A stretch of 64,000 bases of DNA from Hemiscyllium ocellatum (Eukaryota): assembly GCF_020745735.1 (NCBI RefSeq), contig NC_083435.1, positions 4,255,905 through 4,319,904 of the forward strand, given 5' to 3'. This document shows, piece by piece, positions 11,061 through 56,989 of this stretch. How positions within the stretch are numbered: position 1 is the first letter of the stretch; each line of letters opens with the position of its first letter. A program made the translations under genes and the position numbers. The notes beneath the pieces were generated by a model, which did not search any database, was not told the DNA's origin, and was given only the letters and a program-made list of their open reading frames with translations.

Positions 11061-11076
11061 GGCTCTTAGAAGAGCC
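11061..11076 (-). terminator. Histone 3' stem-loop (H2B variant 1)
   Basis: Reverse complement GGCTCTTCTAAGAGCC-ACTCC, with AAATAGGGCTG downstream. Confidence 0.9.
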
Positions 11077-11141
11077 GTTTTTCTTTTCCGGGGTGGTTTT
11101 AACAAAGAGGTATAATCCCGACGGGGCAAGGGGACACAGTC

Positions 11142-11621
11142 CTACTTGGAGCTGGTGTATTTGGTGACCGCCTTGGTGCCCTCGGACACGGCGTGTTTGG
11201 CCAGCTCCCCGGGGAGCAGCAGGCGGACGGCGCTCTGGATCTCCCGGGAGGACAAGGTCTGCCGCCGGGTATAGTGGACCAGGCGGGAAGCCTCGGCGGC
11301 CAGGCGCTCGAAGATGTCGCCCACGAACGAATTGATGACACTCATAGCCTTGGAGGAGATACCGGTGTCGGGGTGCACCTGCTTCAGCACCTTGTAGATG
11401 TAGAGGCTGTAGCTCTCCCGGCGGCGGTTCCGGCGGTGCCTCCGGTCGCTCGCCGCCCCCCGGCGGGACATCTTCATCGCCGTCTTCTTTGAGCCTTTCT
11501 TGGAGACGGCGCCCTTGGCGGCACCGGTCACCCCTGTCGAAGACGAGGCGGAGACGGCGGCCGACGAAGCGGCTGAGGAGGAGGCGGCGGCGGACGCCGA
11601 AGAGGAGGCGGTGGTCGGCAT
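11142..11621 (-). CDS. Histone H2B variant with extended Ser/Ala-rich N-terminus (159 aa)
   Basis: ATG at 11621 (MPTTASSS). [26 protein letters not shown]...[26 protein letters not shown] is an unambiguous H2B fold. Confidence 0.95.
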
Positions 11622-16364: not shown

Positions 16365-16739
<375 letters not shown>

Positions 16740-16881
16740 GACCAGGAGGAGGAAAGCGTTTTTGCTTATTTTGTTTTATTATAAACGACCCCCTTTGAAA
16801 ACACCCCCCGAATGGAATTCCTCTGAACCTCGCCTTTATTTCATTTTACTTTAATGAAACAAAACAAAACAAAAACCCAAA

Positions 16882-16897
16882 GGCTCTTTTAAGAGCC
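16882..16897 (+). terminator. Histone 3' stem-loop (H4)
   Basis: CCAAA-GGCTCTTTTAAGAGCC-AGC, with purine-rich GGAAGAAGG downstream. Confidence 0.92.
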
Positions 16898-17973
16898 AGC
16901 TCATTCTGTCCAGGAAGAAGGCTATTACTGAGGAGCTTTTACTTTGCACGGTTTTATTGATAACGTTTAAACTCACCGAGGCATGTGGAATGGGTTCTGT
17001 GCCTAAATAAAAGCATAAAGTACACGAGGCGGGAGAAAACTAACTGAATCAGAAGGGAATGCTGGCAAATGGGACTAGTTGAGCCAAAGGACTTATTTTC
17101 GTGTCTGCCGATCATCAAATACCCATCGGCAGTATTTTCATCTTACTTCCACACCTGCTTCATAGCCTTGTACATTATGGCCTTTCAAGTGCTCATCTAA
17201 ATACCACATAATTGTCTAAGAGTTCAAACCACTCTTACAGGCAATGAGCTCCAGATACCCACCACCTTATCCACCAATCCCCTTAAACCCCCTGCTCCTT
17301 ACCTTACATCCAAGGCCCCCTGGTTATTGACCCCTCACCTAAAGGGAAATGTTTTCCCTAGCTACCCTACCTGTGGCCCTCCCAGTAAATCCATTCTGTC
17401 TCCATCGCTGAGACTCTCCAGCCCAGGGCAGCATCCTGGTAAATCTCCCAGTGTACCCACTCCAGTAATTCCCTCGAATGCGGGTTCCATATGTGGCCTA
17501 ACTAACACTGTTAGGTAACTAACTAAGTTCCATCAGAACAGCTAGATCATTCAGTTCCATAATCTCCTTGCTCTAATATTCAGTGCCTTGACAATACTAA
17601 TGAGCCAATATCACATTGAACGGAGGACCAGTCTTAAAGGGCCGAGTTGCTTACTGCTGTTGCTATCTACTATGTTTCTAAGTATCTTATGTCACTTCTT
17701 GTAGTGAAGCCAGTTGCTTCCCTTGAATCTTTGAGAGTAGAAGTGTTGTATTAGCAGAGGTTTTGGCTGCCTGAACCAGGAAGGTGAGCAGGGTCAGCTA
17801 TTCAGAGAGGAGTTTGAGACAAGCTGGAGAAATCCTCTTGTTCTCACAGACCGATCTTGGAGGTGTTTTCAATGTGGACAGAACCCGGCTGAGGTTTACA
17901 TTGAGGTAGTGAGCGATCAGGGAGAATCTGATGGCTGTGCAGTGGCTATTTCTTTTAAATATACAGAATCCTT

Positions 17974-19075
17974 ATAGTGTGGAAACAGGCCATTCAGCCC
18001 AGCAAGTCCGGGGGCATCACATACACACACACCCATCTCCATAGCTAACCAACTCGCCCACACACTGCAGACAATTTCCCATGGCCAATCCACCCTGACC
18101 TGCACATCCCTGGACACTATGGGACAATTTCCCATGGCCAATCCACCCTGACCTGCACATCCCTGGGCACTATGGGACAATTTCCCATGGCCAATTCACC
18201 CTAACCTGCACATCCCTGGGCACTATGGGACAATTTCCCATGGCCAATCCACCCTAACCTGCACATCCCTGGGCACTATGGGACAATTTCCCATGGCCAA
18301 TCCACCCTAACCTGCACATCCCTGGGCACTATGGGACAATTTCCCATGGCCAATCCACCCCAACCTGCACATCCCTGGGCACTATGGGACAATTTCCCAT
18401 GGCCAATCCACCCTGACCTGCACATCCCTGGGCACTATGGGACAATTTCCCATGGCCAATTCACCCTAACCTGCACGTCCCTGGGCACTATGGGACAATT
18501 TCCCATGGCCAATCCACCCTAACCTGCACGTCCCTGGGCACTATGGGACAATTTCCCATGGCCAATCCACCCTAACCTGCACATCCCTGGGCACTATGGG
18601 ACAATTTCCCATGGCCAATCCACCCCAACCTGTACATCCCTGGGCACTGTGGGACAATTTCCCCACGGCCAATCCACCCTAACCTGCACATCCCTGGGCA
18701 CTATGGGACAATTTCCCATGGCCAATCCACCCTAACCTACACATCCCTGGGCACTGTTGGACAGTTTCCAATGGCCAATCCACCCTAACCTGCACATCCC
18801 TGGGCACTATGGGACGATTTCCCATGGCCAATCCACCCTAACCTGCACATCCCTGGACACTATGGGACAGTTTCCAATGGCCAATCCACCCTAACCTGCA
18901 CATCCCTGGACACTACGGGACAGTTTCCAATGGCCAATCCACCCTAACCTGCACATCTTTCAACTGTGGGAGGAAACCGGAGCAAACCCACACAGACAGT
19001 CGCCCGAGACTGAAAATCGATCCCAGGTCACTGGAGCTGTGAGACAGCCGTGCTAACCACTGACCCACCGTGCTG
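17974..19075 (-). mobile_element. HE1-type SINE with internally amplified segment
   Basis: SINE tail (GTGTGGAAACAGGCC) at about 17976 and SINE head (GCTAACCACTGACCCACCGTGC) at about 19052-19073 bracket the 53-bp array. Confidence 0.8.
18071..18957. repeat. 53-bp minisatellite, about 17 copies, SINE-derived
   Basis: Unit CTATGGGACAATTTCCCATGGCCAATCCACCCTAACCTGCACATCCCTGGGCA. Confidence 0.95.
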
Positions 19076-19393
19076 TTTGGGTCCTGAAATCAAAGGCTGC
19101 ACTGAGAGTCCTCTCTGTGGAAATTCAACACGCATATATAAGGACTGTGGGAAATAACTACTCACATATAAGAATACAGAAATTAATCAATAAAATGCTG
19201 CAGAAATGAAACACTTAAATAAAAGGATTGTGAGAATTAAACATGCAGTGTCAAGCAAGATACTCCACAGATGCTGCCAGAAACTGTTATGTTTCTCCAG
19301 CCATTACTACTTTCTATCTATCTATCTATTTATCTAATGCCAGATTGTTTGTGCTGTGTGTGCTTTTATCTCCATCTTTATTCAAGGTAAAAT

Positions 19394-22300
19394 CCCAGAT
19401 CAGGATCTTGTCTGAATATCTCCCTCCCCAAACCCCAGACCGGGATCCTGTCTGAATATCTCCCTCCACAAACCCCAGACCAGGATCCTGTCTGAATATC
19501 TCCCTCCTCAAACCCCACACAAGGATCCTGTCTGAATATCTCCCTCCCCAAACCCCAGACCAGGATCCTGTCTGAAAATCTCCCTCCCCAAACCCCAGAT
19601 CAGGATCTTGTCTGAATATCTCTCTCCCCAAACCCCAGACCAGGTTCCTCTCTGAATATCTCCCTCCCCTCCCCAAACCAGGATCCTTTCTGAATATCTC
19701 CGTCCCCAAACCCCAGACGAAAATCTTGTCTGAATATCTCCCTTCCCAAACCGGGATCCTGTCTGAATATCTCCCTCCCCAAACCGCAGACCAGGATCCT
19801 TTCTGAATATCTCCCTCCCCAAACCCCAGACTAGGATCCTGTCTGAATATCTCCCTCCCCAAACCCCAGATCAGGATCCTGTCTGAATATCTCCCTCCCC
19901 AAACCCCAGATCAGGATCCTGTCTGAATGTCTCCCTCCCAAAACCCCAGACCAGGATCTTGTCTGAATGTCTCCCTCCCCAAACCCCAGACCAGGATCCT
20001 GTCTGAATATCTCCCTCCCCAAACCCCAGATCAGGATCCTGTCTGAATATCTCCCTCCCCAAACCCCAGACCAGGATCCTGTCTGAATGTCTCCCTCCCC
20101 AAACCCCAGACCAGGATCCTGTCTGAATATCTCCGTCCCCAAACCCCAGACGAAAATCTTGTCTGAATATCTCCCTTCCCAAACCGGGATCCTGTCTGAA
20201 TATCTCCCTCCCCAAACCGCAGACCAGGATCCTTTCTGAATATCTCCCTCCCCAAACCCCAGACTAGGATCCTGTCTGAATATCTCCCTCCCCAAACCCC
20301 AGATCAGGATCCTGTCTGAATATCTCCCTCCCCAAACCCCAGACCAGGATCCTGTCTGAATGTCTCCCTCCCCAAACCCCAGACCAGGATCTTGTCTGAA
20401 TGTCTCCCTCCCCAAACCCCAGACCAGGATCCTGTCTGAATATCTCCCTCCCCAAACCCCAGATCAGGATCCTGTCTGAATATCTCCCTCCCCAAACCCC
20501 AGACCAGGATCCTGTCTGAATATCTCCCTCCCCAAACCCCAGACCAGGATCCTGTCTGAATATCTCCCTCCCCAAACCCCAGACCAGGATCCTGTCTGAA
20601 TATCTCCCTCCCCAAACCCCAGACCAGGATCCTGTCTGAATATCTCCCTCCCCAAACCCCAGCCCAGGATCCTGTCTGAATGTCTCCCTCCCCAAACCCC
20701 AGACCAGGATCTTGTCTGAATATCACCCTCCCCAAACCCCAGACCAGGATCCTGTCTGAATATCTCCCTCCCCAAATCCCAGACCAGGATCCTGTCTGAA
20801 TATCACCCTCCCCAAACCCCAGATCAGGATCCTGTCTGAATATCTCCCTCCCCAAACCCCAGATCAGGATCCTGTCTGAATATCTCCCTCCCCAAACCCC
20901 AGATCAGGATCCTGTCTGAATGTCTCCCTCCCCAAACCCAGACCAGGATCTTGTCTGAATGTCTCCCTCCCCAAACCCCAGCCCAGGATCCTGTCTGAAT
21001 ATCTCCCTCCCCAAACCCCAGCCCAGGATCCTGTCTGAATGTCTCCCTCCCCAAACCCCAGACCAGGATCTTGTCTGAATATCTCCCTCCCCAAACCCCA
21101 GACCAGGATCCTGTCTGAATATCTCCCTCCCCAAACCCCAGACCAGGATCCTGTCTGAATATCACCCTCCCCAAACCCCAGATCAGGATCCTGTCTGAAT
21201 ATCTCCCTCCCCAAACCCCAGATCAGGATCCTGTCTGAATATCTCCCTCCCCAAACCCCAGACCAGGATCCTGTCTGAATGTCTCCCTCCCCAAACCCCA
21301 GACCAGGATCTTGTCTGAATATCTCCCTCCCCAAACCCCAGATCAGGATCCTGTCTGAATATCTCCCTCCCCAAACCCCAGATCAGGATCCTGTCTGAAT
21401 ATCTCCCTCCCCAAACCCCAGACCAGGATCCTGTCTGAATGTCTCCCTCCCCAAACCCCAGACCAGGATCTTGTCTGAATATCTCCCTCCCCAAACCCCA
21501 GATCAGGATCCTGTCTGAATATCTCCCTCCCCAAACCCCAGATCAGGATCCTGTCTGAATATCTCCCTCCCCAAACCCCAGATCAGGATCCTGTCTGAAT
21601 ATCTCCCTCCCCAAACCCCAGACCAGGATCCTGTCTGAATGTCTCCCTCCCCAAACCCCAGACCAGGATCTTGTCTGAATATCTCCCTCCCCAAACCCCA
21701 GACCAGGATCCTGTCTGAATATCTCCCTCCCCAAACCCCAGATCAGGATCCTGTCTGAATAGCTCCCTCCCCAAACCCCAGACCAGGATCCTGTCTGAAT
21801 ATCACCCTCCCCAAACCCCAGATCAGGATCCTGTCTGAATATCTCCCTCCCCAAACCCCAGATCAGGATCCTGTCTGAATATCTCCCTCCCCAAACCCCA
21901 GACCAGGATCCTGTCTGAATGTCTCCCTCCCCAAACCCCAGACCAGGATCTTGTCTGAATATCTCCCTCCCCAAACCCCAGACCAGGATCCTGTCTGAAT
22001 ATCTCCCTCCCCAAACCCCAGATCAGGATCCTGTCTGAATATCTCCCTCCCCAAACCCCAGACCAGGATCCTGTCTGAATGTCTCCCTCCCCAAACCCCA
22101 GACCAGGATCTTGTCTGAATATCTCCCTCCCCAAACCCCAGACCAGGATCCTGTCTGAATATCTCCCTCCCCAAACCCCAGATCAGGATTCTGTCTGAAT
22201 AGCTCCCTCCCCAAACCCCAGACCAGGATCCTGTCTGAATATCTCCCTCCCCAAACCCCAGATCAGGATCCTGTCTGAATATCTCCCTCCCCAAACCCCA

Positions 22301-24296
22301 GACCAGGATCCTGTCTGAATATCTCCCTCCCCAAACCCCAGACCAGGATCCTGTCTGAATATCTCCCTCCCCAAACCCCAGCCCAGGATCCTGTCTGAAT
22401 ATCTCCCTCCCCAAACCCCAGCCCAGGATCCTGTCTGAATGTCTCCCTCCCCAAACCCCAGACCAGGATCTTGTCTGAATATCTCCCTCCCCAAACCCCA
22501 GACCAGGATCCTGTCTGAATATCTCCCTCCCCAAATCCCAGACCAGGATCCTGTCTGAATATCACCCTCCCCAAACCCCAGATCAGGATCCTGTCTGAAT
22601 ATCTCCCTCCCCAAACCCCAGATCAGGATCCTGTCTGAATATCACCCTCCCCAAACCCCAGATCAGGATCCTGTCTGAATATCTCCCTCCCCAAACCCCA
22701 GATCAGGATCCTGTCTGAATATCACCCTCCCCAAACCCCAGATCAGGATCCTGTCTGAATATCTCCCTCCCCAAACCCCAGATCAGGATCCTGTCTGAAT
22801 ATCTCCCTCCCCAAACCCCAGATCAGGATCCTGTCTGAATGTCTCCCTCCCCAAACCCAGACCAGGATCTTGTCTGAATGTCTCCCTCCCCAAACCCCAG
22901 ACCAGGATCCTGTCTGAATATCTCCCTCCCCAAACCCCAGCCCAGGATCCTGTCTGAATGTCTCCCTCCCCAAACCCCAGACCAGGATCTTGTCTGAATA
23001 TCTCCCTCCCCAAACCCCAGACCAGGATCCTGTCTGAATATCTCCCTCCCCAAATCCCAGACCAGGATCCTGTCTGAATATCACCCTCCCCAAACCCCAG
23101 ATCAGGATCCTGTCTGAATATCTCCCTCCCCAAACCCCAGATCAGGATCCTGTCTGAATATCTCCCTCCCCAAACCCCAGATCAGGATCCTGTCTGAATG
23201 TCTCCCTCCCCAAACCCAGACCAGGATCTTGTCTGAATGTCTCCCTCCCCAAACCCCAGATCAGGATCTTGTCTGAATATCTCCCTCCCCAAACCCCAGA
23301 CCAGGATCCTGTCTGAATATCACCCTCCCTAAACCCCAGACCAGGATCCTGTCTGAATATCACCCTCCCCAAACCCCAGATCAGGATCCTGTCTGAATGT
23401 CTCCCTCCCCAAACCCCAGAACAGGATCCTCTGAATATCTCCCTCCCCAAACCCCAGATCAGGATCCTGTCTGAATATCTCCCTCCCCAAACCCCAGACC
23501 AGGATCTTGTCTGAATATCTCCCTCCCCAAACCCCAGACCAGGATCCTGTCTGAATATCTCCCTCCCCAAATCCCAGACCAGGATCCTGTCTGAATATCA
23601 CCCTCCCCAAACCCCAGATCAGGATCCTGTCTGAATATCTCCCTCCCCAAACCCCAGATCAGGATCCTGTCTGAATATCTCCCTCCCCAAACCCCAGATC
23701 AGGATCCTGTCTGAATGTCTCCCTCCCCAAACCCAGACCAGGATCTTGTCTGAATGTCTCCCTCCCCAAACCCCAGATCAGGATCTTGTCTGAATATCTC
23801 CCTCCCCAAACCCCAGACCAGGATCCTGTCTGAATATCACCCTCCCTAAACCCCAGACCAGGATCCTGTCTGAATATCACCCTCCCCAAACCCCAGATCA
23901 GGATCCTGTCTGAATGTCTCCCTCCCCAAACCCCAGAACAGGATCCTGTGAATATCTCCCTCCCCAAACCCCAGACCAGGATCTTGTCTGAATATCTCCC
24001 TCCCCAAACCCCAGACCAGGATCTTGTCTGAATATCTCCCTCCCCAAACCCCAGACCAGGATCCTGTCTGAATATCTCCCCCTTCCCCCCAAACCCCAGA
24101 CCAGGATCCTGTCTGAATATCTCCCCCTTCCCCCCAAACCCCAGACCAGGATCCTGTCTGAATATCTCCCTCTTCCCCCCAAACCCCAGACCAGGATCCT
24201 GTCTGAATATCTCCCCCTTCCCCCCAAACCCCAGACCAGGATCCTGTCTGAATATCTCCCCCTTCCCCCCAAACCCCAGACCAGGATCCTGTCTGA
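19394..24296. repeat. 40-bp tandem satellite, about 4.9 kb, roughly 120 copies
   Basis: Unit CCAGGATCCTGTCTGAATATCTCCCTCCCCAAACCCCAGA with minor variants. Confidence 0.98.
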
Positions 24297-24372
24297 GCGT
24301 CTCTCTGCCCGGACGCTGGGTGTGTCTTGAGTGTCTCCCTCACTGGGTAAACAGTCCACGCCCCAGTCTCTG

Positions 24373-24483
24373 ATTGGTCATTTCCCATCAATTTTGTGAC
24401 CTCACAAAGGACGCCGAACGGTTTGACCAATCCTAAGGTGGCGCTCTGCGATCCTTCATTTGCATAGAACCTGCAGTTAAATA
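24373..24483 (+). promoter_or_regulatory. H2B-type promoter: CCAAT boxes, octamer, TATA-like box
   Basis: ATTGG at about 24374, CCAAT 24427-24431, ATTTGCAT 24458-24465, TTAAATA 24477-24483. Confidence 0.85.
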
Positions 24484-24636
24484 GGAGAGCGGGCGGGCGG
24501 GCGCAGGTTCGGCGCTGGGGGCGGGCGGGAGAGGGAGGGAGACCGGCCGCTCTGTCCGTCGGACAGCGGCTAGCCCTCGGACGTCGGCGCGCTTCTTGAT
24601 CAATCCACTGATCGATAATCCATCGGAGCGACTGAA

Positions 24637-24963
24637 ATGGCCCCAAAGCCGGCGGGGGCCCGGTGCTACCGCAAGAGGAAGCGCCGGGAGAGCTACTGCC
24701 GGTACATCCGCCGGGTGCTGAAGCAGATCCACCCGGAGCGGAGCCTCTCGGCGGCGGCCGCCGCGGCGCTCGACTCCTTCCTGGGCGACCTCTTCGAGCG
24801 GCTGGCGAGCGAGGCGTCCCGCCTGGTCCGCTACAGCCGGCGGCAGACCCTGTCCTCCCGGGAGATCCAGAGCGCCGTCCGCCTGCTGCTCCCGGGGGAG
24901 CTGGCCCAGCACGCCGTGTCCGAGGGCAGCAAGGCGGTCACCACGTTCGCCGCCTGCCCGTGA
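24637..24963 (+). CDS. Short, highly divergent histone H2B variant (108 aa)
   Basis: [17 protein letters not shown]...[53 protein letters not shown]. Intact ORF, CpG-rich, with an octamer promoter. Confidence 0.9.
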
Positions 24964-25295
24964 GGAAGCAGAGGGCGGAGAGGCAGCGGCGGGGCCGGCC
25001 GGCCGGCGGGCAAGGTCCCCTTCGGAGCTCAGCAGCCCCCCCGACCCCCGGGAGGAGCCGGGGGCGGAGGGGAGAGGAGGGGGGGGAGAGGGAGCCCGAG
25101 GGAAATGAGAACTGGAAGCTTTGAACCGATCTCCAGAGACGTCCCCGAGCCGCGTTCTGTTGGTGTTTTGCGGTTGAGAACAAACTTGTCCAAAAAAAGG
25201 AGCTGCTCCGATTGCAGATGGAAACCCGACCCCCCCCCCCACCCCAGAATAATGTTTTACTCCCTTCACCACGCACTCCACCCCCCCACCCCCCC

Positions 25296-25306
25296 AATAA
25301 AATAAA
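25296..25306 (+). terminator. Candidate polyadenylation signal for H2B variant 2
   Basis: Overlapping AATAAAATAAA followed by GT/T-rich sequence; a second AATAAA at about 25618. No histone stem-loop seen after this gene. Confidence 0.5.
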
Positions 25307-26169
25307 ATGTGGTTGCAATGGTTTTATTTGCAATGATTTGTGCCACAATCAGTTTGCAATGATTTGTTGCTCCTCTGCCTCTTTCGCTAAATTGTCCCGG
25401 AGGAAGCTCGATGGTCTGTGGTGCTGCTCCTCGCGTTTGTCCGGACCCGGGGGGGGGGAAGGAGACTGACCCCCCCAGGAGTGAAAAGTGAAGTGCAGAA
25501 CTTCTCCATGTCGTGCCTCTCCACATCCTGGCGCTCGCTCTCTCTCTCTCTCTCTCTCCATTCCCCCCCCACCCGCCAAACCTTCCACCGAGTATAAACA
25601 TGAATAATAATAATAATAATAAAAGGCGGTTTGTACCGAAAATGCGGTCTTGTGAGTTAGTGGAGCCGAAGCAAAATGTTGAGTTTTGGTGTAGATTGTC
25701 TAATTGAGCCTGTGAAGTGGACAGGCTTGACGGGCTGAATGGCCCCTTCTCTTCCCCCCCCACCCCCCGTCCCTCAGGCTGCACAATCCAAACTCCCAAA
25801 GATGTAACGCGAGGTGAGCTTCGAGGTATAAAGGGAAACTTCGATTTTTTTTGGGAGGGGGCTCTTGTGTTGCAGTGGTAATGTCCCTGCCTCTGGGTCG
25901 GAAGTCCCAATCCAGCCTGCTTCAGACATGGGCCTCTGAACAGGATAGGTAGGAATGTCTGAATCCACCAGGGGAAGTTGTTAGTGCTACATCTAGGTAA
26001 AGATATTTATTTTCTTTTATACAAAAATAAATGACGTTTAGTTGTTTCTTGAAAGAATGAAATTACGGATTTAAAACAAGATTTTTTTTACTATGCATAG
26101 TACAGGAGTCAGACAATAAATAGGAGCTTGGGTTATATCCAAGTTGTCTGAAATCAGAATAATTTTAAA

Positions 26170-26810
26170 GTTAACTATGAATTAAGACCACACCTTGAGT
26201 ACTGTGTGTAGTTTTGGTATCCCAGTCTGAGCAAGGACACTCTTGTTATTGAGGCAGTCCGGTAAGGATTCCCTGGGATGGCAGGACTGATGTGAGGGCT
26301 TGTACTCGCTGGAATTTAGAACAATGGTGGGGAGAGAGAGAGAGGGGGGGCAAAATCTCATGGAAACATATAAAATCCAGATGGGACTGGACAGGCCAGA
26401 TGCTGGGCAAGTCCGAAACGAGGGGTCACAGCCTAAGAATAAGGGTAGGCCATTCGGGACTGAGATGAGGAAAGATGTTTCCCCTCAGGGGGTTGTGAAC
26501 CTGTGGAATTCTCTCCCACAGGAAGATTTGGGGCCACTTCATTAGATATATTCAAGAGGGAGCTGGAGGTGGGCCTGGTGGCTAAATGAAACATTGATTT
26601 TCCTGCTCCTCAGCTGCTGCCTGAACTGCTGTGCCTTTCCAACACCACTCTAACCTACAGTCTTGCAGCCAAAGGGATCAGGGGTTATGTGGAGATGGTG
26701 GGAATGGGATACTGAGTTTGCACCATCAGACATGATTGTATTGAAAGGTGGGGCAGACTCCAAAGGGCTGCACGGTCTACTCCTGCAGCTCTTTTCGACG
26801 TTTCTATGTT
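26170..26810 (+). mobile_element. CR1-type LINE 3' fragment with a nested Penelope-tail piece
   Basis: ORF 26300-26545 (GVVNLWNSLPQE); family A fragment at about 26588-26655. Confidence 0.75.
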
Positions 26811-28322
26811 AATAGGTAAACATAAATTTTACATAGAATGGTAGGTACAACTAAGAAAGACTTAGGAACTTGGTCTAAAGTCAGCTCAGCATATACCTCA
26901 TCACATTAAAGTCCTTCAAAACTTTGCCTTCCTCATAAAGAATTTACCCTCTTCTCATCCTCCGTCAAATCGCCAGATGCCAGCGAAGTGTAACAGCATG
27001 TCTCCTTCTGGAATGGCTTTTCACCATTGGCATGGTACCTGCTTGAAGGACCTCAGCTTTGTTGGTGATAGTCTGGATGGTGTCCATTCAAAGAACAACT
27101 TACCCTTCTGTGATTCACAAGTTGATATGATTTATCATAATCATGTGTACCTAAGTACAGTGAAAAGCTTTGTTTGCGAGCAGTACAGGCAGATCATAGT
27201 AAGCAAGGATGTACAGACCACTGGGGTTGCTTAGACAGAGCGAGAGTCCTGGATCATGCCTCTGCCTTCCTCTGGTTACCTGTAGTGTACCACTGGAATC
27301 ACCAACTGATCAAGGACTGCACTGTGTCCATAACTTGAACCAGATTACGTCTCCTTAGAAGGTTTGGTTTTCAAGCTCAGTTTCAGTCTTAGCTGTTTTA
27401 GAAACACGGCCATAAGTTACACAACAGCAGGTTATAGACCAACAGGTCTGTTTGGAATCACAACCTTTCAGAGGTGAACTGACTCCGCCTGACAAAGAGT
27501 CAGCACTCGGAAAGCTTATGATTCCAAATAAACCTGTTGGGCCAGAAACTGCTGCTGATTGATTGTGACTTTGTCCACCCCAGTCCAACACCAGCACCTC
27601 CACATAATTTCTATGACCTGGATGACTTCTGTCTTCTCCCTGAAGCCTGAGTCTCTTCCATTTCTCAAAGTCATACTACTCCAGTTTCCCTGTTGGTCTG
27701 TCAATGCGGATCAGGGGCTGTTGTGGCGCTGGCTGTTGTGATACCTCTGGGCCAGGAGGTTCAAGTCCTGCTTGGTCTAGAGGTGTGTCATGACAGATTT
27801 ATTAGAAAGGAGATCTATTGTTCCCTAGTTGTCAATAGGATGCACATTTGTTTTGAGCAATCTCATACCTTAGTGGTAGTGATCCTACCTCCGAGTTGAG
27901 ACTGTGGTGCTGGAAAGGCACAGCAGTTCAGGCAGCAACCGAGGAGCAGGAGAATCGACGCTTTGGGCAAAATCCCTTCATCACCTCAAGCTGACTATTA
28001 CAGTGGTGGTTGGTTTGTTTTTCAGTGGGGTGGGGGAGTTCTGTTAGAGATATGGAAATAGCAGAGCAATGGTCAGGGATGGAGGTGGGAGTCCTTCACG
28101 TCAGTTTGTTAACCGACTGATGGATTTGGTCATTTCTAATCTCACACACAACTTTCTCCACTCGATGAGAAGTAAGTGAAGACTTGCAGATGCTGGAGAT
28201 CAGAGTTGAGAGCTGGAAGAGCACAGCAGGTCAGGCAGCATCCCAGGAGCAGGAGAATCGATGTTTCAGGCATAAGTCCTTCATCAGGAACGAGGCTTGT
28301 GGGCTGGGGGCAAGGTAGCTGG

Positions 28323-29992: not shown

Positions 29993-32535
29993 ATGGGGGA
30001 CTTGAATTTTGGACCACCAAAACTAACTCACCTCAGGACAGCACGTCCCGAAGTGCCCTGGTGGCACCTCAGGGTGGGTACAGACGTAACTCTGCATGGT
30101 CAATTGCTGTTGGACAGTGTAGCCGTACAGAAAGCAAGCCTAGACCAGGTGTTTAACCAAGCGCCAGGTCAAAAGGAACTTATACCAACAAGACTGAAGG
30201 AGACCTTCACAAATACCGCATTAATGGTCACAATACTAAACGGTCTCCATGGGTCACCACAATATTCGGTCCGTCAAACAATTGCGCTAGGGAAACCCCC
30301 CATTGGCTGGGCGCCCCCGAGCACCGGCAATTCCCTAGGGTGGAAAACCAAACTGCTCGTGACCCTTACCCCGCACTGGCAAGACGGCCAGTTCGCCTCC
30401 CCCACTGGCACAGCCATCTCGGATACCTCCACCCGAGACCTGCATAATCTAACTGCAACTATCACCATCCCGCCTGACGCATCTACCACCGAGTATACCC
30501 CAGTCCCAAAGACACCAGAATCACCACCACTTACTGGGAAGGTTTTAGAGGAGATTAGGGCTCAGTTTAGGGAAAATAACACTGCCAAAGAGGCTCAGAG
30601 AAAACTCCGCAACCTGGACAGCAGTCTCAAGCTGTGGCGAAGCAAGGACTGGTTCCCTCAGGATGACCAACCCTACTTTGCAGCCGGGGATTTTGAAAAA
30701 TTCCGGACCAACATCCAGGCCTGTCTAAAAGAAAGAAAGGACGCGGCAAAGAAAGGGGTTTTCAATCTGTCCAAGCCGTCCACTAAAATAGAAGATGAAA
30801 CTGTCTACCTACGAGAGCTCTTGGTAAGGTTCCAAACCCATTTGCCAACCCCGCCTGCTGACACACCAGTTACAGGCGAACAGGATCCCCTCCCAGAATA
30901 CGAACCCGAATGGGTTCTCAGCCAGACTCCCCTCTACCCCCCTTCCCTCTATACACCCCCTATTCCGGAGCCGATCCAAAACGACAGCCACAAGGGAAGC
31001 CTGCCGCCCACCTAGGGCGGCACGGTGGCACAGTGGTTAGCACTGCTGCCTCACAGCGCCAGGGACCTGGGTTCAATTCCCGCCTCAGGTGACTGACTGT
31101 GTGGAGTTTGCACGTTCTCCCCGTGTCTGCGTGGGTTTCCTCCGGGTGCTCCGGTTTCCTCCCACAGTCCAAAGATGTGCGGGTCAGGTGAATTGGCCAT
31201 GCTAAATTGCCCGTAGTGTTAGGTAAGGGGTATATGTAGGGGTATGGGTGGGTTGCGCTTCGGCGGGTCGGTGTGGACTTGTTGGGCCGAAGGGCCTGTT
31301 TCCACACTGTAAGTAATCTAATCTAATCTAATCTAACCAGTCCACAGTCAGGGACACCTGGTCCCGAAGTACCCCCCATGACCCTGCCTGCAGTGAGCGC
31401 CGCACCAACAGCACCATTTTCGCCATGTTACGGGGGGCCGACTCTACAAGCCCCTGTCGTTAAGGTATTAGAGGGGAATTTCACATATGAGGACCCGGCC
31501 GCCGACCCCATGACGGAACGACTAGAGAGCGTACTCAACAGCCATGGACAGAAATTAAACGCCCTCACCAGAATGGTTGCGGCCAGACCAGGGATAGCAC
31601 AACCAGGTGCCGACCTGTGTGACCTTGGCCAGGCAGATACCTTGCCACAAAAGTGGGAAGTCCGGCCAGTGAAAGTCCAGGGGGACGGGTACACTCCTGC
31701 CCCAGGTCATGGCGGCCCCCCGGTGTCCAAATTTCCTTCTTTAGGAAGACATGACGAACTGACCATCATGAAAAATCTCTCCATCAGGCCCGAACTGCTG
31801 CCCCATAGAGTTCACAAACCCCGACTTGGGGGCCCCCCCTCACTGCAGAGGACGACACTTTAATTGTCACAGGAGCCCACCTCGTGAAGGGGGGAAGTAA
31901 GCTCCCCTCCCCACCTGACACTACCTCCTCGGAGGACGAGGGTGAGATCCTGGGGGATTTCGATGAAGGGTCCTACACCTCACTCCCACGCGCACACTGT
32001 AGCCCATTGCCAACAACCGCTGACACTGCCCCACTCCTCCAGGCGCCCCTCCTCGCCACTAGCGTGGGGGTAGAGAAGTATGTCCCTTGGTCACGAACAG
32101 ACCTAGACGCCTTGGTCAGGAGGCTTCCCCCGATTACTAACGGAGCGTCTGCTTGGATAGCCACTTTCGAAAGGGAAACCTGTCATGAGAAACTGGCTCT
32201 AGCCGATTTCAGAACCATCATGGTGCGCATCCGAGCCGAGGAGGCGCTGATAAGGGCAGAGAGATTAGCCAGGTGCTCTAGGTCAGACGAAACTGCCTCT
32301 TTCGACCTTTTCCGAAACATAATATGGCGGTCCCTGCGGGACAGCTTCCCCACTACTTTCTCCCTCGATGCGCTCGGGACCCTCAGGCTAAAGGACGATG
32401 AGGACGTGCATGAATACCTAACAAGGGCCTGGGACCTGTGGGAGACTGGGACGGGTGAAAGGCCAGATAGCTCTCCGTTGGCCACAGTGCACTTTCGGAA
32501 GGGTGTCACCGAGGGACTCCCTGCCCCAGTGCTGA
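29993..32535 (+). pseudogene. gag: ERV gag, disrupted by a SINE and a frameshift, and truncated
   Basis: ORFs 29993-31015, 31378-31863 and 31884 onward. Pro-rich region, then YVPWSRTDLDALVRRLPPITNGASAWIATFERET, which resembles the fish ERV capsid N-terminus. Confidence 0.8.
31015..31336 (+). mobile_element. HE1-type SINE inserted in gag
   Basis: GGGCGGCACGGTGGCACAGTGGTTAGCAC...GGGTTCAATTCCC...(TAATC)n. Nearly identical to the copy at 6619-6947. Confidence 0.93.
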
Positions 32536-33930
32536 GGTGCCTGGGTTTCTGCATGGTGGTAAGACTGTCTGTGCAGGGCCCAAGGGATCCATGTGGGGCA
32601 ACTGTGGTCATTGACACAGACCCCATGCGGGATATGACCTTCCAATTCGATCTTTGCGATGTAATAAACTGTGGGGGGACTGACTCAGAAGCGGGATGGG
32701 CTGCTTACGGTGTCTACATGTGCCCCTGCTCATGCTCTCCCCGCATCTTGCACAAATGCTACGGATACCCTAAAGATATCCATACACGCCGCATGTGTGC
32801 CTCCTGGGATGATGTTTGGTGGGGCCAGTCTCACACCACCGCCCCCAAACGTCCAGAATACCTGGACTTCAGTAAAAAACTCTCCCTGCGGAGGGGGCGA
32901 GTCTCTGTCTCACAAGCCCGTAAGAACCCTTTACTCCTCCGAATCAAGCCTGGCCTCTATAATCCTATGATCATGGCAGGTTGGTCAGCCGACACCTGTT
33001 GGGCACAGGGGCACCTTCCCGACCGACTGCCTGCCGGCCATACTACGGTCCTCTATCTGGCACTCGGGGTTGCGGTTACCGGCACAGATCCGGAGGGGGT
33101 GCTCAGGATAAATTTCGTTACACCTGACACCTCACAGAACCGCACTCTACCGTCCTTCCATCGGGACGCCCATCCCCCACAGCCTGTACCAGGCACCGTT
33201 GTGGGGTTTGATTCACGTACCCTCAATAAGCTGATTGATCCCCGGCAGCAAATTGCTCTCGCCATGGGATACATAGAGACAAACACCTGGCTAGACCGGA
33301 TCATCCAGTTTTCGCGGCAGGCAGGCCACGACCACTGCTGGGTATGCGCGAGGGGGGAGGCCCGGATTGATAATGAGTAGGACCCCATTTGAGGACGGCC
33401 ACATCGCTGCGCACTCGACCTCATGTCCAACACAATACCTGCGTCAGAGTGCAGGTCGTGGGAACAGTACTTCCCAATGGCACCAGCGAATGTTACCCCT
33501 CCTAACTTTGTTCTACATCCCCTACTGAACTACACTTGCTTCATCAACCCCCGACCGCTCGCCCAGGCATACCCAGTCGGCACAGTTGACCGTGCCGCCT
33601 GTAGCAGAACCTGGGTACTCACAGGGAACCAAGCGGCAGCATTGACGGTGAGCCGCGCAGAATTGTGGTGGTACTGCGGAGGGAAGATTCTGTACAATTG
33701 GTTGCCCCTAAATTGGGAAGGCTGTTGTGTTCTGATAACCCTTAATATTCCACTCTTCATCTCCCCACGGGCCCCGGGGGACTATACCTTCCTTGACCCT
33801 CCGCCACAGCCTGCCTCTCCGGTTCGGCACAAACGCGCGACTGACCCACTGTTGGATCTGACAAATTCTGATGGGGTCTGGATTGATGCCATTGGTCAGG
33901 CAAGAAACATCCCCGATGAATTCCGCGTTG
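32536..33930 (+). pseudogene. env: ERV env remnant (SU, furin site, start of TM)
   Basis: FDLCDVINCG, CASWDDVWW, CWVC (CXXC), LWWYCGG...LP.NWEGCC, RHKR and WIDAIGQARNIPDEF. Stops at 33378 and 33390; rest of TM not recognisable. Confidence 0.85.
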
Positions 33931-35045
33931 CCCTGCAGCCATACCCCACTGACCCTTCCTACGTCCACCGTTTACGCCGCTGTTGGGGGGGCGGGGGGAA
34001 GTTACTTCACGTACTCACGATTGCATCTGTGTGCACTCCTCGGCTCGGCTTAACCTTGGCGTTTTCAACACTTTTTTGCATCCTGCTAACCTCTGCCGGT
34101 TGGTTGCTCTCTCTAACGCCAAGGGGGGACTGTTGTTGTACTACCTCGGGAGCAATGCTCTTGCCATGACTACAGTACACACAGTGCGACTATCTTTCAT
34201 GCTCCTCTGTTCCGATCAGATAGCAGGGTTCCATCTGTATGTGTCTACTCCTACTCCTCCTACCCCGTACTAACCCTGGGGTAGGTCGGTCTGCTATCCA
34301 GGTACCCCTTCCATCATTGGCAACGTGCACACTAGCACTGTCCACTACATGCTAGCATCAGGGAACACTGTGTGCCCCGGCGACTCGCCTAACCATCAGA
34401 GCGCACGGCCTCTATCAACGGATTCGCCTAACGACCACGAGGAACAGCCACTAGCCACCACCCTTCGCTGTAAGGGTTAATGACTGGTTAGCCAAGGACG
34501 GGTGGGCCTCCTCGGATGAGAGGCTACCTAAAGCAGGCACAGTCAAACTGTGGGGCCGTACGTTCGAGTCATACTCAACGCTCGCACCAATGTCTGCGAC
34601 ACATGATTGTTCTATGAGACATTCTTCTCTGCACCAGACCCGGGCCACAGTACACCTGTTTGCTGCGTTTTGATTACTGCCGAGAACAAGACTGCTGCTA
34701 GTGTCCCATTTCGTATCCCTCACAAATTTACACTTGGGTGTTCCATGGACTGCAGACCTAAGCCCCCAGCCGATTTATTGCTCTTCTTTCTCCCCTCTAG
34801 AACTCTTCCGCCCGTTACTATACTATTCTGTGATACCTTCATACCTTCACCACTTCCCCGACCTCTGTCTGTCATTTTACCATAATTGATTAATTTGTCC
34901 TTTTGTTACCTTTGCAGAAGAACCCTCCCGGAGCGACACCTTAGTTTAGATTTGCATGTTTTTGTTTAAATTCTCCGTATGTACCTTGTTACGCGGGCGT
35001 CGCGATGAGGGGTGTGTGGCCTCTAAAAGAGGCCATGGGAGGGAA

Positions 35046-51868: not shown

Positions 51869-53260
51869 NNNNNNNNNNNNNNNNNNNNNNNNNNNNNNNN
51901 NNNNNNNNNNNNNNNNNNNNNNNNNNNNNNNNNNNNNNNNNNNNNNNNNNNNNNNNNNNNNNNNNNNNNNNNNNNNNNNNNNNNNNNNNNNNNNNNNNNN
52001 NNNNNNNNNNNNNNNNNNNNNNNNNNNNNNNNNNNNNNNNNNNNNNNNNNNNNNNNNNNNNNNNNNNNNNNNNNNNNNNNNNNNNNNNNNNNNNNNNNNN
52101 NNNNNNNNNNNNNNNNNNNNNNNNNNNNNNNNNNNNNNNNNNNNNNNNNNNNNNNNNNNNNNNNNNNNNNNNNNNNNNNNNNNNNNNNNNNNNNNNNNNN
52201 NNNNNNNNNNNNNNNNNNNNNNNNNNNNNNNNNNNNNNNNNNNNNNNNNNNNNNNNNNACACACCCACACACAAAAACACACACAGACACACACACACAC
52301 AAACATACAGAGACACACACACACAGGCACACAAAAACATAAACAGACACATACACACCCACACACAAAAACATACACACCCACACACACACATACAAAA
52401 ACATACACAGACACACACAAAAGCATACACAGACACGCACACAAACACAGACATAAACAGACACACACACACACCCNNNNNNNNNNNNNNNNNNNNNNNN
52501 NNNNNNNNNNNNNNNNNNNNNNNNNNNNNNNNNNNNNNNNNNNNNNNNNNNNNNNNNNNNNNNNNNNNNNNNNNNNNNNNNNNNNNNNNNNNNNNNNNNN
52601 NNNNNNNNNNNNNNNNNNNNNNNNNNNNNNNNNNNNNNNNNNNNNNNNNNNNNNNNNNNNNNNNNNNNNNNNNNNNNNCAGACACATACATCCACACACA
52701 CAAAAGCATACACAAACATGCACACACAGACACACACACAAACATAAACAGACAAACACACCCACACACAAAAACACACACAGACAGACACNNNNNNNNN
52801 NNNNNNNNNNNNNNNNNNNNNNNNNNNNNNNNNNNNNNNNNNNNNNNNNNNNNNNNNNNNNNNNNNNNNNNNNNNNNNNNNNNNNNNNNNNNNNNNNNNN
52901 NNNNNNNNNNNNNNNNNNNNNNNNNNNGACTCACAGACAAACACAAAAACATACACAGATACACACACAGACAGATAAACACAAAAACGCACAAACAGAC
53001 AGACAAAAACACACATTCAGACTCAGGCAAACACAAAAACGAAATGCACAGCCACACAGACGCAAAGACGTACAGGCACACAGATGCACAGACACACAGA
53101 CACACAGACAAATACACAAAAACACACAGAGACACACACAGTCTCAAACACACACAGAAAAACACATAGACATACAAAAACACAGACTGTCATTCAAAAC
53201 CTGTGCAAACATCAACAAAACCTACACACGCAGACAATGATAAACACATATGTACAGACA
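51869..53260. other. Assembly gaps (51869-52258, 52477-52678, 52792-52927) within CA-rich low-complexity repeat
   Basis: Runs of N interleaved with degenerate (CA)n. Confidence 0.98.
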
Positions 53261-55221: not shown

Positions 55222-55667
55222 AAGTGTACACAAACGCAGACGCATACAAAACCACACACACATTGTTTTTATATTTCTGAGCTTTTAAAACTGTGCAGTG
55301 AAATGAGAAAGAAGTGTTTTGAAACCCCGGGATTTTACAAAGACGCCTGCATGTGTTGAAAGTAAATAATAATTTGCTCCTCACACATACACACACATGC
55401 ACAGGCAGAGGAACACACCCAGGACCGAAGTTAAAACGCGCACACAGACACACACACACTCTCTCTCTCAGAGAAACATCCCCCACCCCCAGCCCCCACC
55501 CGCTGGCTCTGTCCAAAGCTCAGCTCTCCGCCCAGGGCTGGTCCTGCAGCTCTCAGAGCCGGGGAGCAGGGTGAGCTGAGTGAGGGACTGCAGTGCTGTC
55601 TACATGGAGAGCCCCAGGGGGTGAGGCAGAGTCTCCCTGCCTGGTCCCCGGGAGGGCAGCTGCAGCA

Positions 55668-56700
55668 ATGAGCCGGTCCGAGGAGCTGCACCACCGGGAG
55701 AACCGGCCGAGACTGCACCGGGACCCGCTGTCCCGGGAGCTCCAGCCCCACTCCCGCCCCAGGGACCCCCATCCCAGAGACCCCTATCCCATAGACTCCC
55801 AACCCAGGGACCCCTATCCCAGGGACCCCCATCCCAGGGACCCCCAACCCATAGACTCCCACCCCAGGGATCCCCATCCCATAGACCCCCATCCCAGGGA
55901 TCCCCATCCCAGGGATCCCCATCCCAGAGACCCCCATCCCAGGGACCCCCATCCCAGGGATCCCCATCCCAGGGATCCCCATCCCAGAGACCCCTATCCC
56001 AGGGATCCCCACCCCAGGGATCCCCATCCCAGAGACCCCTATCCCAGGGATCCCCATCCCATAGACCCCCATCCCAGAGACCCCTATCCCAGGGATCCCC
56101 ATCCCATAGACCCCCATCCCAGGGACCCCGACCCCAGGGACCCCTATCCCATAGACTCCCATCCCAGAGACCCCTATCCCAGGGACCCCGACCCCAGGGA
56201 CCCCCATCCCATAGACTCCCATCCCAGGGACCCCTATCCCAGGGATCCCCATCCCAGGGACCCCGACCCCAGGGACCCCTATCCCATAGACTCCCATCCC
56301 AGGGACCCCCACCCCAGGGACCCCCTTCCCCAGGACCTCAGCCCCCGGGACCCGGAGCCCCGCTCGTTCCTGCACAGCCTGCGGACCCTGTTCGACATCC
56401 TGGACCAGGAGGGTCGGGGCTGGGTCGAGCTGCGGGAGATAGAGAGCCGCTGGCCGGGGGAGGGCCGGAGGGAGCCGGCGCTGCCTGCCGGACTGATGGG
56501 CTGCCTCCGGAGAGCAGCAGCGCCGAGCGGGAGGCTCACCTTCCCCCGGCTCCTGGCCGGGATCAGGGCGGCCCTGCAGCAGGAAGCCGGCAGCCCGGAG
56601 CCGGACAGTGCCCCGGGCTGCTCCCGGTACCAACAACCCGGGAAGAGCCGGAGAGATACCCCCGCGGGAGGTCACAGGAGCTGGGCAGCAGCAGCAGCAG
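55668..56700 (+). CDS. SAPCD2: First coding exon of a suppressor-APC-domain (SAPCD2-like) gene
   Basis: PRSFLHSLRTLFDILDQEGRGWVELREIESRW...CLRRAAAPSGRLTFPRLLAGIRAAL matches the SAPCD2 N-terminal domain. ATG 55668 in GCAATG context; donor CAG|GTCAGT at 56700/56701 (phase 1). Orthology versus a SAPCD1-lineage paralogue is not established. Confidence 0.8.
55761..56360 (+). repeat. In-frame 15-bp coding minisatellite (about 40 x RDPHP)
   Basis: Unit AGGGACCCCCATCCC with RDPYP/IDSHP/RDPDP variants and no frameshift. Confidence 0.95.
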
Positions 56701-56989
56701 GTCAGTGCCTCTTCACTAAAACTCAGCAACTCCAGTCCCTTCAACCACTAGATAGCACAGACCACAACATCAGGCTGGAATCGCCTTCATTCATAAAGCT
56801 GGGACAGGGAGAAGGCACTCGGTGCAGTGTTGATGTGTCAGTTTATCTATATATTCAATACATCAATCTGAGCCAAGGAGAAATCTTGTTTACAGCCTGT
56901 ATATGTCTTAACATGTTTTAATTTACAGATCTGAGTCAATAAGATGTTTGGTGTACTGTCTGTCTGTGCACTAATTCATCTATATATAC

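Follow-up and report, generated by a model that had tools for sequence, protein, structure and literature searches.

A divergent histone H2B variant of galeomorph sharks, encoded at the edge of a variant histone cluster in Hemiscyllium ocellatum

A histone H2B-like reading frame of the shark Hemiscyllium ocellatum that is devoid of both the K120 ubiquitylation site and a 3' stem-loop raises the question of whether it is a functional gene for an H2B variant and, if so, whether the missing lysine is what defines that variant. It lies on the forward strand at 24637-24963 of the 64-kb stretch of DNA that we analysed (the window), as a single unbroken, intronless frame of 108 codons that begins in a strong Kozak context (A at -3, G at +4) and ends in a TGA stop at 24961-24963. 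The encoded protein matches the Pfam Histone domain (PF00125) with 74 bits (E=1.5e-20; cut-off 26.4), and phmmer aligns residues 11-106 with solved H2B chains at ~1e-35. Numbering the residues by alignment to these chains, whereby residue i of the query corresponds to human i+17, we identified T103 as K120T, Q91 as K108Q, P108 as K125P, F104 as Y121F and C107 as S124C, with the acidic-patch glutamates E105/E113 retained as E88 and E96. All 25 columns that are invariant over a 30-sequence alignment are kept. Among the 51 positions invariant in the 23 H2Bs that lie outside the shark clade described below (group B), the protein keeps 38, and its 13 departures are mostly conservative (K>R, V>I, D>E, N>D, V>L, T>S, Y>F); as the whale shark counterpart keeps about as many (37 of 51), the H. 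ocellatum copy does not stand out in this respect. An AlphaFold model built on the 30-sequence alignment places helices at residues 6-31, 39-63, 74-84 and 87-106, the order expected of H2B (alpha1-alpha2-alpha3-alphaC); with a mean pLDDT of 68, a modest confidence, it adds little beyond this order. Positions 24637-24963 thus hold a real, intact and divergent H2B variant gene, whose exact protein product is found in the databases solely on the genome contig itself (assembly GCA_020745735.1).

Like canonical H2B, the variant displays the histone fold, the alphaC helix, the two acidic-patch glutamates and a basic HBR-like stretch, and it shares with it the intronless structure, an octamer/CCAAT/TATA promoter and a core that is 59% identical. 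It differs in the absence of the 3' stem-loop, in a tail that is ~16 residues shorter (108 aa in total against 123-125 aa for canonical shark H2Bs), in a complement of 5 lysines and 16 arginines where canonical H2B has ~20 and 8, in the presence of three cysteines (C10, C21 and C107) where canonical H2B has none, and in the K120T, K108Q and K125P replacements. A run of six alanines (A39-A44, AAAAAA) further occupies the L1/alpha2 junction, at the start of helix 2. The first-pass annotation of this locus had already recognized K120T and K108Q at the C-terminus, the three cysteines and the poly-Ala stretch, all of which are borne out by translation and by alignment to H2B chains; the truncation of the N-tail that it described also stands, at about 16 residues instead of the 18 or so given there. 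With these replacements, the H. ocellatum protein cannot carry ubiquitin at position 120; its C-terminal cysteine is exposed and almost no modifiable lysines are left. When set against replication-coupled H2Bs, it thus lacks both the stem-loop and the K120 site (AVTTFAACP versus AVTKYTSSK).

The variant lies at one end of a histone cluster, with six further histone genes at 0.8-17 kb of the window (four H1-like, one H4 and one H2B with a Ser/Ala leader), amounting to seven histone genes within 25 kb, none of which codes for H2A or H3. The H4 gene (16428..16739, + strand; stem-loop at 16877-16923) served as a syntenic anchor and rate control, and the Ser/Ala-leader H2B of 159 aa (11142..11621, - strand; stem-loop at 11034-11081), a member of the sister clade designated group A below, as a second rate control. 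The fourth H1-like frame (4872-5486, - strand) is recognized by the Pfam Linker_histone model with E=9e-10 and is followed by a stem-loop at 4782-4826 that scores just under the Rfam gathering score. The H1 genes close to the variant are Arg-rich. Apart from the histone genes, we observed several other features in the window: a tandem array of 53-bp units (8.6 copies, 18500-18957) between the H4 gene and a large minisatellite; three consecutive long frames of 340, 498 and 248 aa at 29993-34169 (+ strand) that have no Pfam match and may derive from a mobile element; a frame at 55593-56921 (+ strand) whose N-terminal domain resembles the SAPC2 EF-hand (E=4e-22), located after a long repeat of PRDPH-type peptides and probably an exon of the flanking host gene; and three stretches of N, adding up to 728 bases, within a TG/CA-rich simple repeat at 51869-52927.

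Upstream of the variant we located an H2B-type promoter at 24356..24484 (+ strand), comprising an inverted CCAAT box (24373-24377), a CCAAT box (24427-24431), the H2B-type octamer ATTTGCAT (24458-24465, + strand) and a TATA-like box TTAAATAG (24477-24484, + strand). Every block of it is conserved in the whale shark, in agreement with the intact octamer/CCAAT/TATA promoter reported at first pass, and it could still drive transcription in S phase. Further downstream, a block of the 5'UTR at 24544..24580 (+ strand) is identical to its whale shark counterpart at 36 of 37 positions and forms an imperfect palindrome with the arms GCCGCTCTGTCC...GGACAGCGGC. A stable hairpin was rejected for this palindrome, its fold being no better than that of shuffled sequence (z = 0.61); the block could serve protein binding or the control of translation. 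The promoter is abutted by the aforementioned minisatellite, which consists of ~123 copies of a 40-bp unit (19390..24296; C-rich on the + strand, with 94% matches), stops ~75 nt short of the distal CCAAT box and is represented in the whale shark by just ~0.4 kb of the same repeat (scaffold piece L001 9147-9535).

The 3' side of the gene is markedly different from that of its neighbors. Searches with the Rfam histone stem-loop model (RF00032) recover it downstream of each of the other six histone genes in the cluster with 30-38 bits, leaving the variant as the sole one of the seven without it: none was found on either strand of 24000-27000 even at E<=10, as the first-pass annotation had claimed. 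The model likewise detects no stem-loop 3' of the whale shark orthologue, which implies that the loss occurred no later than the split of the two species. Starting fifty nucleotides past the stop codon, the segment GGTCCCCTTCGGAGCT (25014-25029, followed by CAG up to 25032, + strand) is placed by MAFFT on the canonical GGCTCTTTTCAGAGCC stem-loops of the six neighboring genes. Its block TTCGGAGCTCAG is identical in the whale shark, where five bases of the 5' arm are gone, and a hairpin fold is formed by the segment in neither species; with 10 of 16 bases matching, for which we estimated a chance probability of ~0.16 within 100 nt, not significant alone, it is a possible relic of a decayed stem-loop. 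As candidate poly(A) signals we noted two overlapping AATAAA hexamers at 25296 and 25301 (25296..25306, + strand), ~335 nt downstream of the stop and followed by a GT/T-rich stretch, and a distal AATAAA at 25618..25623 (+ strand), also followed by GT-rich sequence. The whale shark has an AATAAA at the position matching the distal one, and the counterpart of the proximal pair falls within an assembly gap. Given that the 64-kb window contains 93 copies of AATAAA on both strands, with a chance expectation of ~0.5 per 660 nt on a single strand, polyadenylation is not demonstrated by the presence of hexamers alone. The earlier proposal that poly(A) signals have replaced the stem-loop is hence upheld for the missing stem-loop and for the hexamers at 25296 and 25618, although such hexamers can be expected to arise there by chance. 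Since the element coupling histone mRNA to S phase has been lost, we infer that the transcript is polyadenylated at ~25296 or 25618.

The best database matches of the variant are shark proteins: orthologues of 113 aa from the whale shark (70% identity), 122 aa from the cloudy catshark (70%), 116 aa from the great white shark (65%), 116 aa from the basking shark, 128 aa from the smooth-hound and 118 aa from the horn shark; the protein database holds none from a closer relative of H. ocellatum. In a maximum-likelihood tree that included canonical shark H2Bs, two other shark variant groups (A and C), H2B.K and invertebrate outgroups, the H. ocellatum protein and those of the six other galeomorph sharks, which span four orders, form one clade with 96/91 support, for which we coin the name group B. 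Its members are additionally united by RVLKQ(I/V)HP and LD/N-SF motifs and by three to four cysteines. Groups A, B and C come together at 94/87, which is under the tool's threshold for strong support, and the H. ocellatum variant has the longest end branch of the tree (0.45). The order H1(-)/H4(+)/H2B(+) recurs in the whale shark, great white and horn shark, with a whale shark scaffold being collinear by BLASTN with 13.4-28 kb of the window and carrying the orthologue at 9956-10297 of the same L001 piece; in the catshark and smooth-hound, a group A H2B and/or an H1 gene is instead found upstream of the group B gene. The shared gene order, together with the single clade, identifies the variant not as a young duplicate but as a single-copy orthologue dating to the common ancestor of the four orders, group B having presumably arisen in the ancestor of galeomorph sharks. 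As a shark-specific H2B, the variant would be of the order of 200 million years old.

Automatic annotation labels the orthologues as "late histone H2B.L4-like" or "H2B 7-like". Groups A and C resemble group B in RRQTL/ISSREIQS-type changes in alpha2-alpha3, group C (126 aa, ending in KYTSCK) also in the cysteine at position 124 and group A in its residence in the same cluster. In contrast to the H. ocellatum variant, however, both retain K120 and 82-88% core identity to canonical H2B, and the group A gene of the window retains its stem-loop. All three groups alter the C-terminal end of alpha2 that faces H4 (A81V, H82R, N84S, S87Q), and the H4 of the cluster has four residues in alpha2-alpha3 that depart from the canonical protein; a co-adaptation of the clustered H2B with H4 is possible.

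We then compared the variant with the H2B variants described from other vertebrates. H2B.K ("H2B type 2-K1") is similarly short (116-119 aa) with a divergent N-tail and has a poly(A) signal. Orthology to it was nonetheless rejected: H2B.K forms a separate clade (96/98) and carries an intron (PMC8857922), whereas the shark variant is a single frame; H2B.K is, moreover, slow-evolving and retains the canonical C-terminal end. Its origin has been placed before bony vertebrates, with an earlier origin that could not be established (PMC8857922). Closer parallels are offered by the mammalian variants H2B.W, H2B.L (subH2B) and H2B.1 (Raman et al. 2022, PMC8857922), which like the shark variant are lineage-specific, fast-evolving and intronless. 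They have poly(A) signals near the stop, comparable to the candidate AATAAA hexamers described above, and H2B.1 is located in a histone cluster (PMC8857922). H2B.L and H2B.W further combine overall constraint with rapidly changing sites, and the mammalian lineage-specific variants are in general germline-expressed, fast-evolving and mostly equipped with poly(A) signals (PMC8857922). By their reported origin, these mammalian variants, which our tree does not sample, arose separately from that of sharks; their germline expression has been demonstrated, that of the shark variant is a proposal, and the survey makes no mention of enrichment in cysteine or arginine among them (PMC8857922).

To gauge the constraint acting on the gene, we relied on codon comparisons of one species pair, H. 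ocellatum and the whale shark, in which selection on the H. ocellatum branch itself is not separable. The variant shows a dS of 0.20 and a dN of 0.16 at 70% protein identity; for the entire gene, the resulting dN/dS of 0.80 does not lie significantly under 1 (Fisher p=0.49). The neighboring H4 has a dS of 0.25, a dN of 0.004 and a dN/dS of 0.0175 with a single amino acid difference, and the group A H2B is 95% identical between the two species, so that the variant evolves far faster than the neighboring H2B. This rate is unevenly distributed: 6 of 46 residues have changed in the segment 56-101 (alpha2C-L2-alpha3-alphaC) as opposed to 24 of 62 elsewhere (p=0.004), with a dN/dS of 0.36 in this segment, which is marginal (p=0.067), 0.64 in the N-tail and 1.15 in alpha1-L1-alpha2N. 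Each of the six changes within the final seven codons is nonsynonymous (dN 0.49), in a segment too short for a test of selection (p=0.28). The dN/dS comparison against an orthologue that the first-pass annotation had put forward thus returns 0.80 overall and 0.36 for residues 56-101. At the nucleotide level, the coding region is 84.7% identical to that of the whale shark with a single, in-frame indel of 15 nt, as against flanks that are 56-75% identical and have accumulated 34 gap events in 1.9 kb, 26 of which are not multiples of three. At the rate of the flanks ~4.4 frameshifting indels would be expected in the coding region and none is observed, an outcome with a probability of 0.012; under simulated neutral substitution the frame remains open in just 30-45% of lineages. 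Taken together, the two put the neutral chance of neither stop nor frameshift in this single pair of species at ~1e-3 to 2e-3. Based on the preserved frame, the paucity of changes in residues 56-101, the conservative nature of the replacements and the conserved blocks of the promoter and 5'UTR, we conclude that selection acts to maintain an open frame and a working fold, with the tail, the alpha1-L1-alpha2N segment and the C-terminal end being under relaxed constraint or diversifying selection.

The C-termini of the seven group B proteins place the missing lysine in perspective. H. ocellatum ends in AVTTFAACP and the catshark in AVTTYAGWK; K120 is kept in the five others, namely the whale shark (AVSKYTDCQ), smooth-hound (AVTKYISCR), great white and basking shark (both AVTKYNSCK) and horn shark (AVTKYTSCK). 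Its presence in five of seven orthologues indicates that the loss is specific to lineages and not a property of the family, and the losses in H. ocellatum and the catshark are apparently independent. Position 108 is likewise K in five members, R in the whale shark and Q in H. ocellatum; the alanine run reads AAAAAA in H. ocellatum and PAAAV in the whale shark, the two species compared that belong to the carpet-shark order, and is absent in the rest. The losses of K120, K108 and K125 and the poly-Ala run are accordingly recent changes in the H. ocellatum lineage. As traits of the family itself we would instead count the three to four cysteines found in all seven members, in six of them including one at position 124, and, in four of the seven, a shift from lysine to arginine that culminates in H. 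ocellatum. The R/(K+R) ratio is 0.63-0.76 in H. ocellatum, the whale shark, catshark and smooth-hound and 0.40-0.48 in the great white, basking and horn sharks, as compared to 0.28-0.36 in canonical H2B. The changes peculiar to H. ocellatum coincide with a pronounced compositional bias: GC3 of the coding region is 0.98 while the flanks have 57% GC, and among the sites that differ between the two species, 23 have G/C in H. ocellatum and A/T in the whale shark, as against 7 with the opposite pattern. Codons for alanine, arginine and proline are GC-rich, and the T103 codon is ACG where the whale shark has AAG. On these grounds, GC-biased substitution is most likely the cause of the K120, K108 and K125 losses and of the poly-Ala run; such a bias in weakly constrained segments would be a sufficient non-adaptive account of poly-Ala, the excess of arginine and K120T/K125P.

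Several observations could be taken to mean that the H. ocellatum copy has no function, or is an incipient pseudogene whose frame is intact by luck while it drifts under GC-biased gene conversion: the high overall dN/dS, the longest end branch, the loss of the family-typical Cys75, K120 and K125, and a database lacking a close-relative orthologue, which makes a recent loss of function in this shark family conceivable. Against this stand the retention of the frame, promoter motifs, Kozak context and synteny over four shark orders, the low neutral probability of an undamaged frame, the avoidance of changes in the alpha2C-alphaC half and the mostly conservative replacements at invariant sites, where the whale shark protein departs as often. 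A young pseudogene, raised as the refuting alternative at first pass, is contradicted by orthologues in six other galeomorph sharks, at least three of which share the gene arrangement. We consequently regard such a decaying copy as very improbable, hold a protein-coding function of the variant to be highly likely and deem it probable that the locus is a functional, single-copy, intronless gene for an H2B variant of the galeomorph lineage at the edge of a variant histone cluster. A more specific reading holds the K120-less C-terminus to be adaptive, with nucleosomes devoid of H2Bub1 blocking the crosstalk to H3K4/K79 methylation and marking transcription-refractory chromatin. The co-occurrence of K120T, K108Q and K125P, the threonine that the catshark has independently acquired at position 120, potentially by convergence, and the absence of any synonymous change in the rapidly diverging last seven codons speak for it. 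However, the lysine is retained in most orthologues including the closest one, the changes in these last codons relative to the whale shark are mostly from A/T to G/C, in line with the general bias, and seven codons are insufficient to establish selection. We consider this reading improbable, and the transcription-refractory function suggested at first pass would at best be specific to this species; a putative disulfide capacity fits better as a trait of group B as a whole. The loss of K120 would then be a species-level detail and not the essence of the variant.

With regard to the biological context of the probable functional variant, we lean slightly towards a germline-specific use, by analogy with the mammalian H2B variants and with a view to the neighboring Arg-rich H1 genes and to dogfish sperm chromatin, for which one report describes that a reducing agent is needed for dispersal (PMC2110730). 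Under this proposal the mRNA would be polyadenylated and hence uncoupled from S-phase decay, and the protein would replace canonical H2B in germ cells, most likely in late spermatogenic cells. The arginines of the variant nucleosomes would bind DNA in a manner that acetylation could not neutralize, the nucleosomes would in H. ocellatum be without H2Bub1, and they might form disulfide links with one another or with Cys-rich protamines. Alternatively, the variant might be a maternal, oocyte or cleavage-stage H2B stored as a stable polyadenylated mRNA, comparable to H2B.K and the cleavage-stage histones of sea urchins. The lost stem-loop and the candidate poly(A) signals would suit this, and both H2B.K and H2B.N are polyadenylated and oocyte-expressed (PMC8857922). 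Yet the variant falls outside the H2B.K clade, has no intron and evolves fast where H2B.K evolves slowly, and its arginines, cysteines and Arg-rich H1 neighbors seem closer to sperm nuclear basic proteins than to the variants of oocytes; we therefore view an oocyte role as rather unlikely. Extending the germline-specific proposal, we tentatively entertain, as a doubtful though specific possibility, that group B independently converged on protamine-like chemistry through Lys-to-Arg replacement, gains of cysteine and losses of modifiable lysines, including K120 in two lineages, so as to form a nucleosomal intermediate of the histone-to-protamine transition that is disulfide-locked into sperm chromatin. 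Its setting would be a single cluster with Arg-rich H1 genes and a putatively co-varying H4.

H2B variants are the least explored of the histone variants and their published catalogue is centered on mammals: the main survey used the elephant shark solely as a search target for H2B.K (PMC8857922), and a full-text literature search returned no published description of shark H2B variants. Group B is thus an undescribed variant class of a well-known kind of protein. Its orthologues with and without K120 constitute natural material for probing what H2B ubiquitylation contributes; at the same time, they caution that even a striking loss of a modification site can arise in a single lineage as a by-product of GC-biased evolution. 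If the proposed role holds true, innovation of H2B in the style of germline variants would have arisen independently outside mammals.
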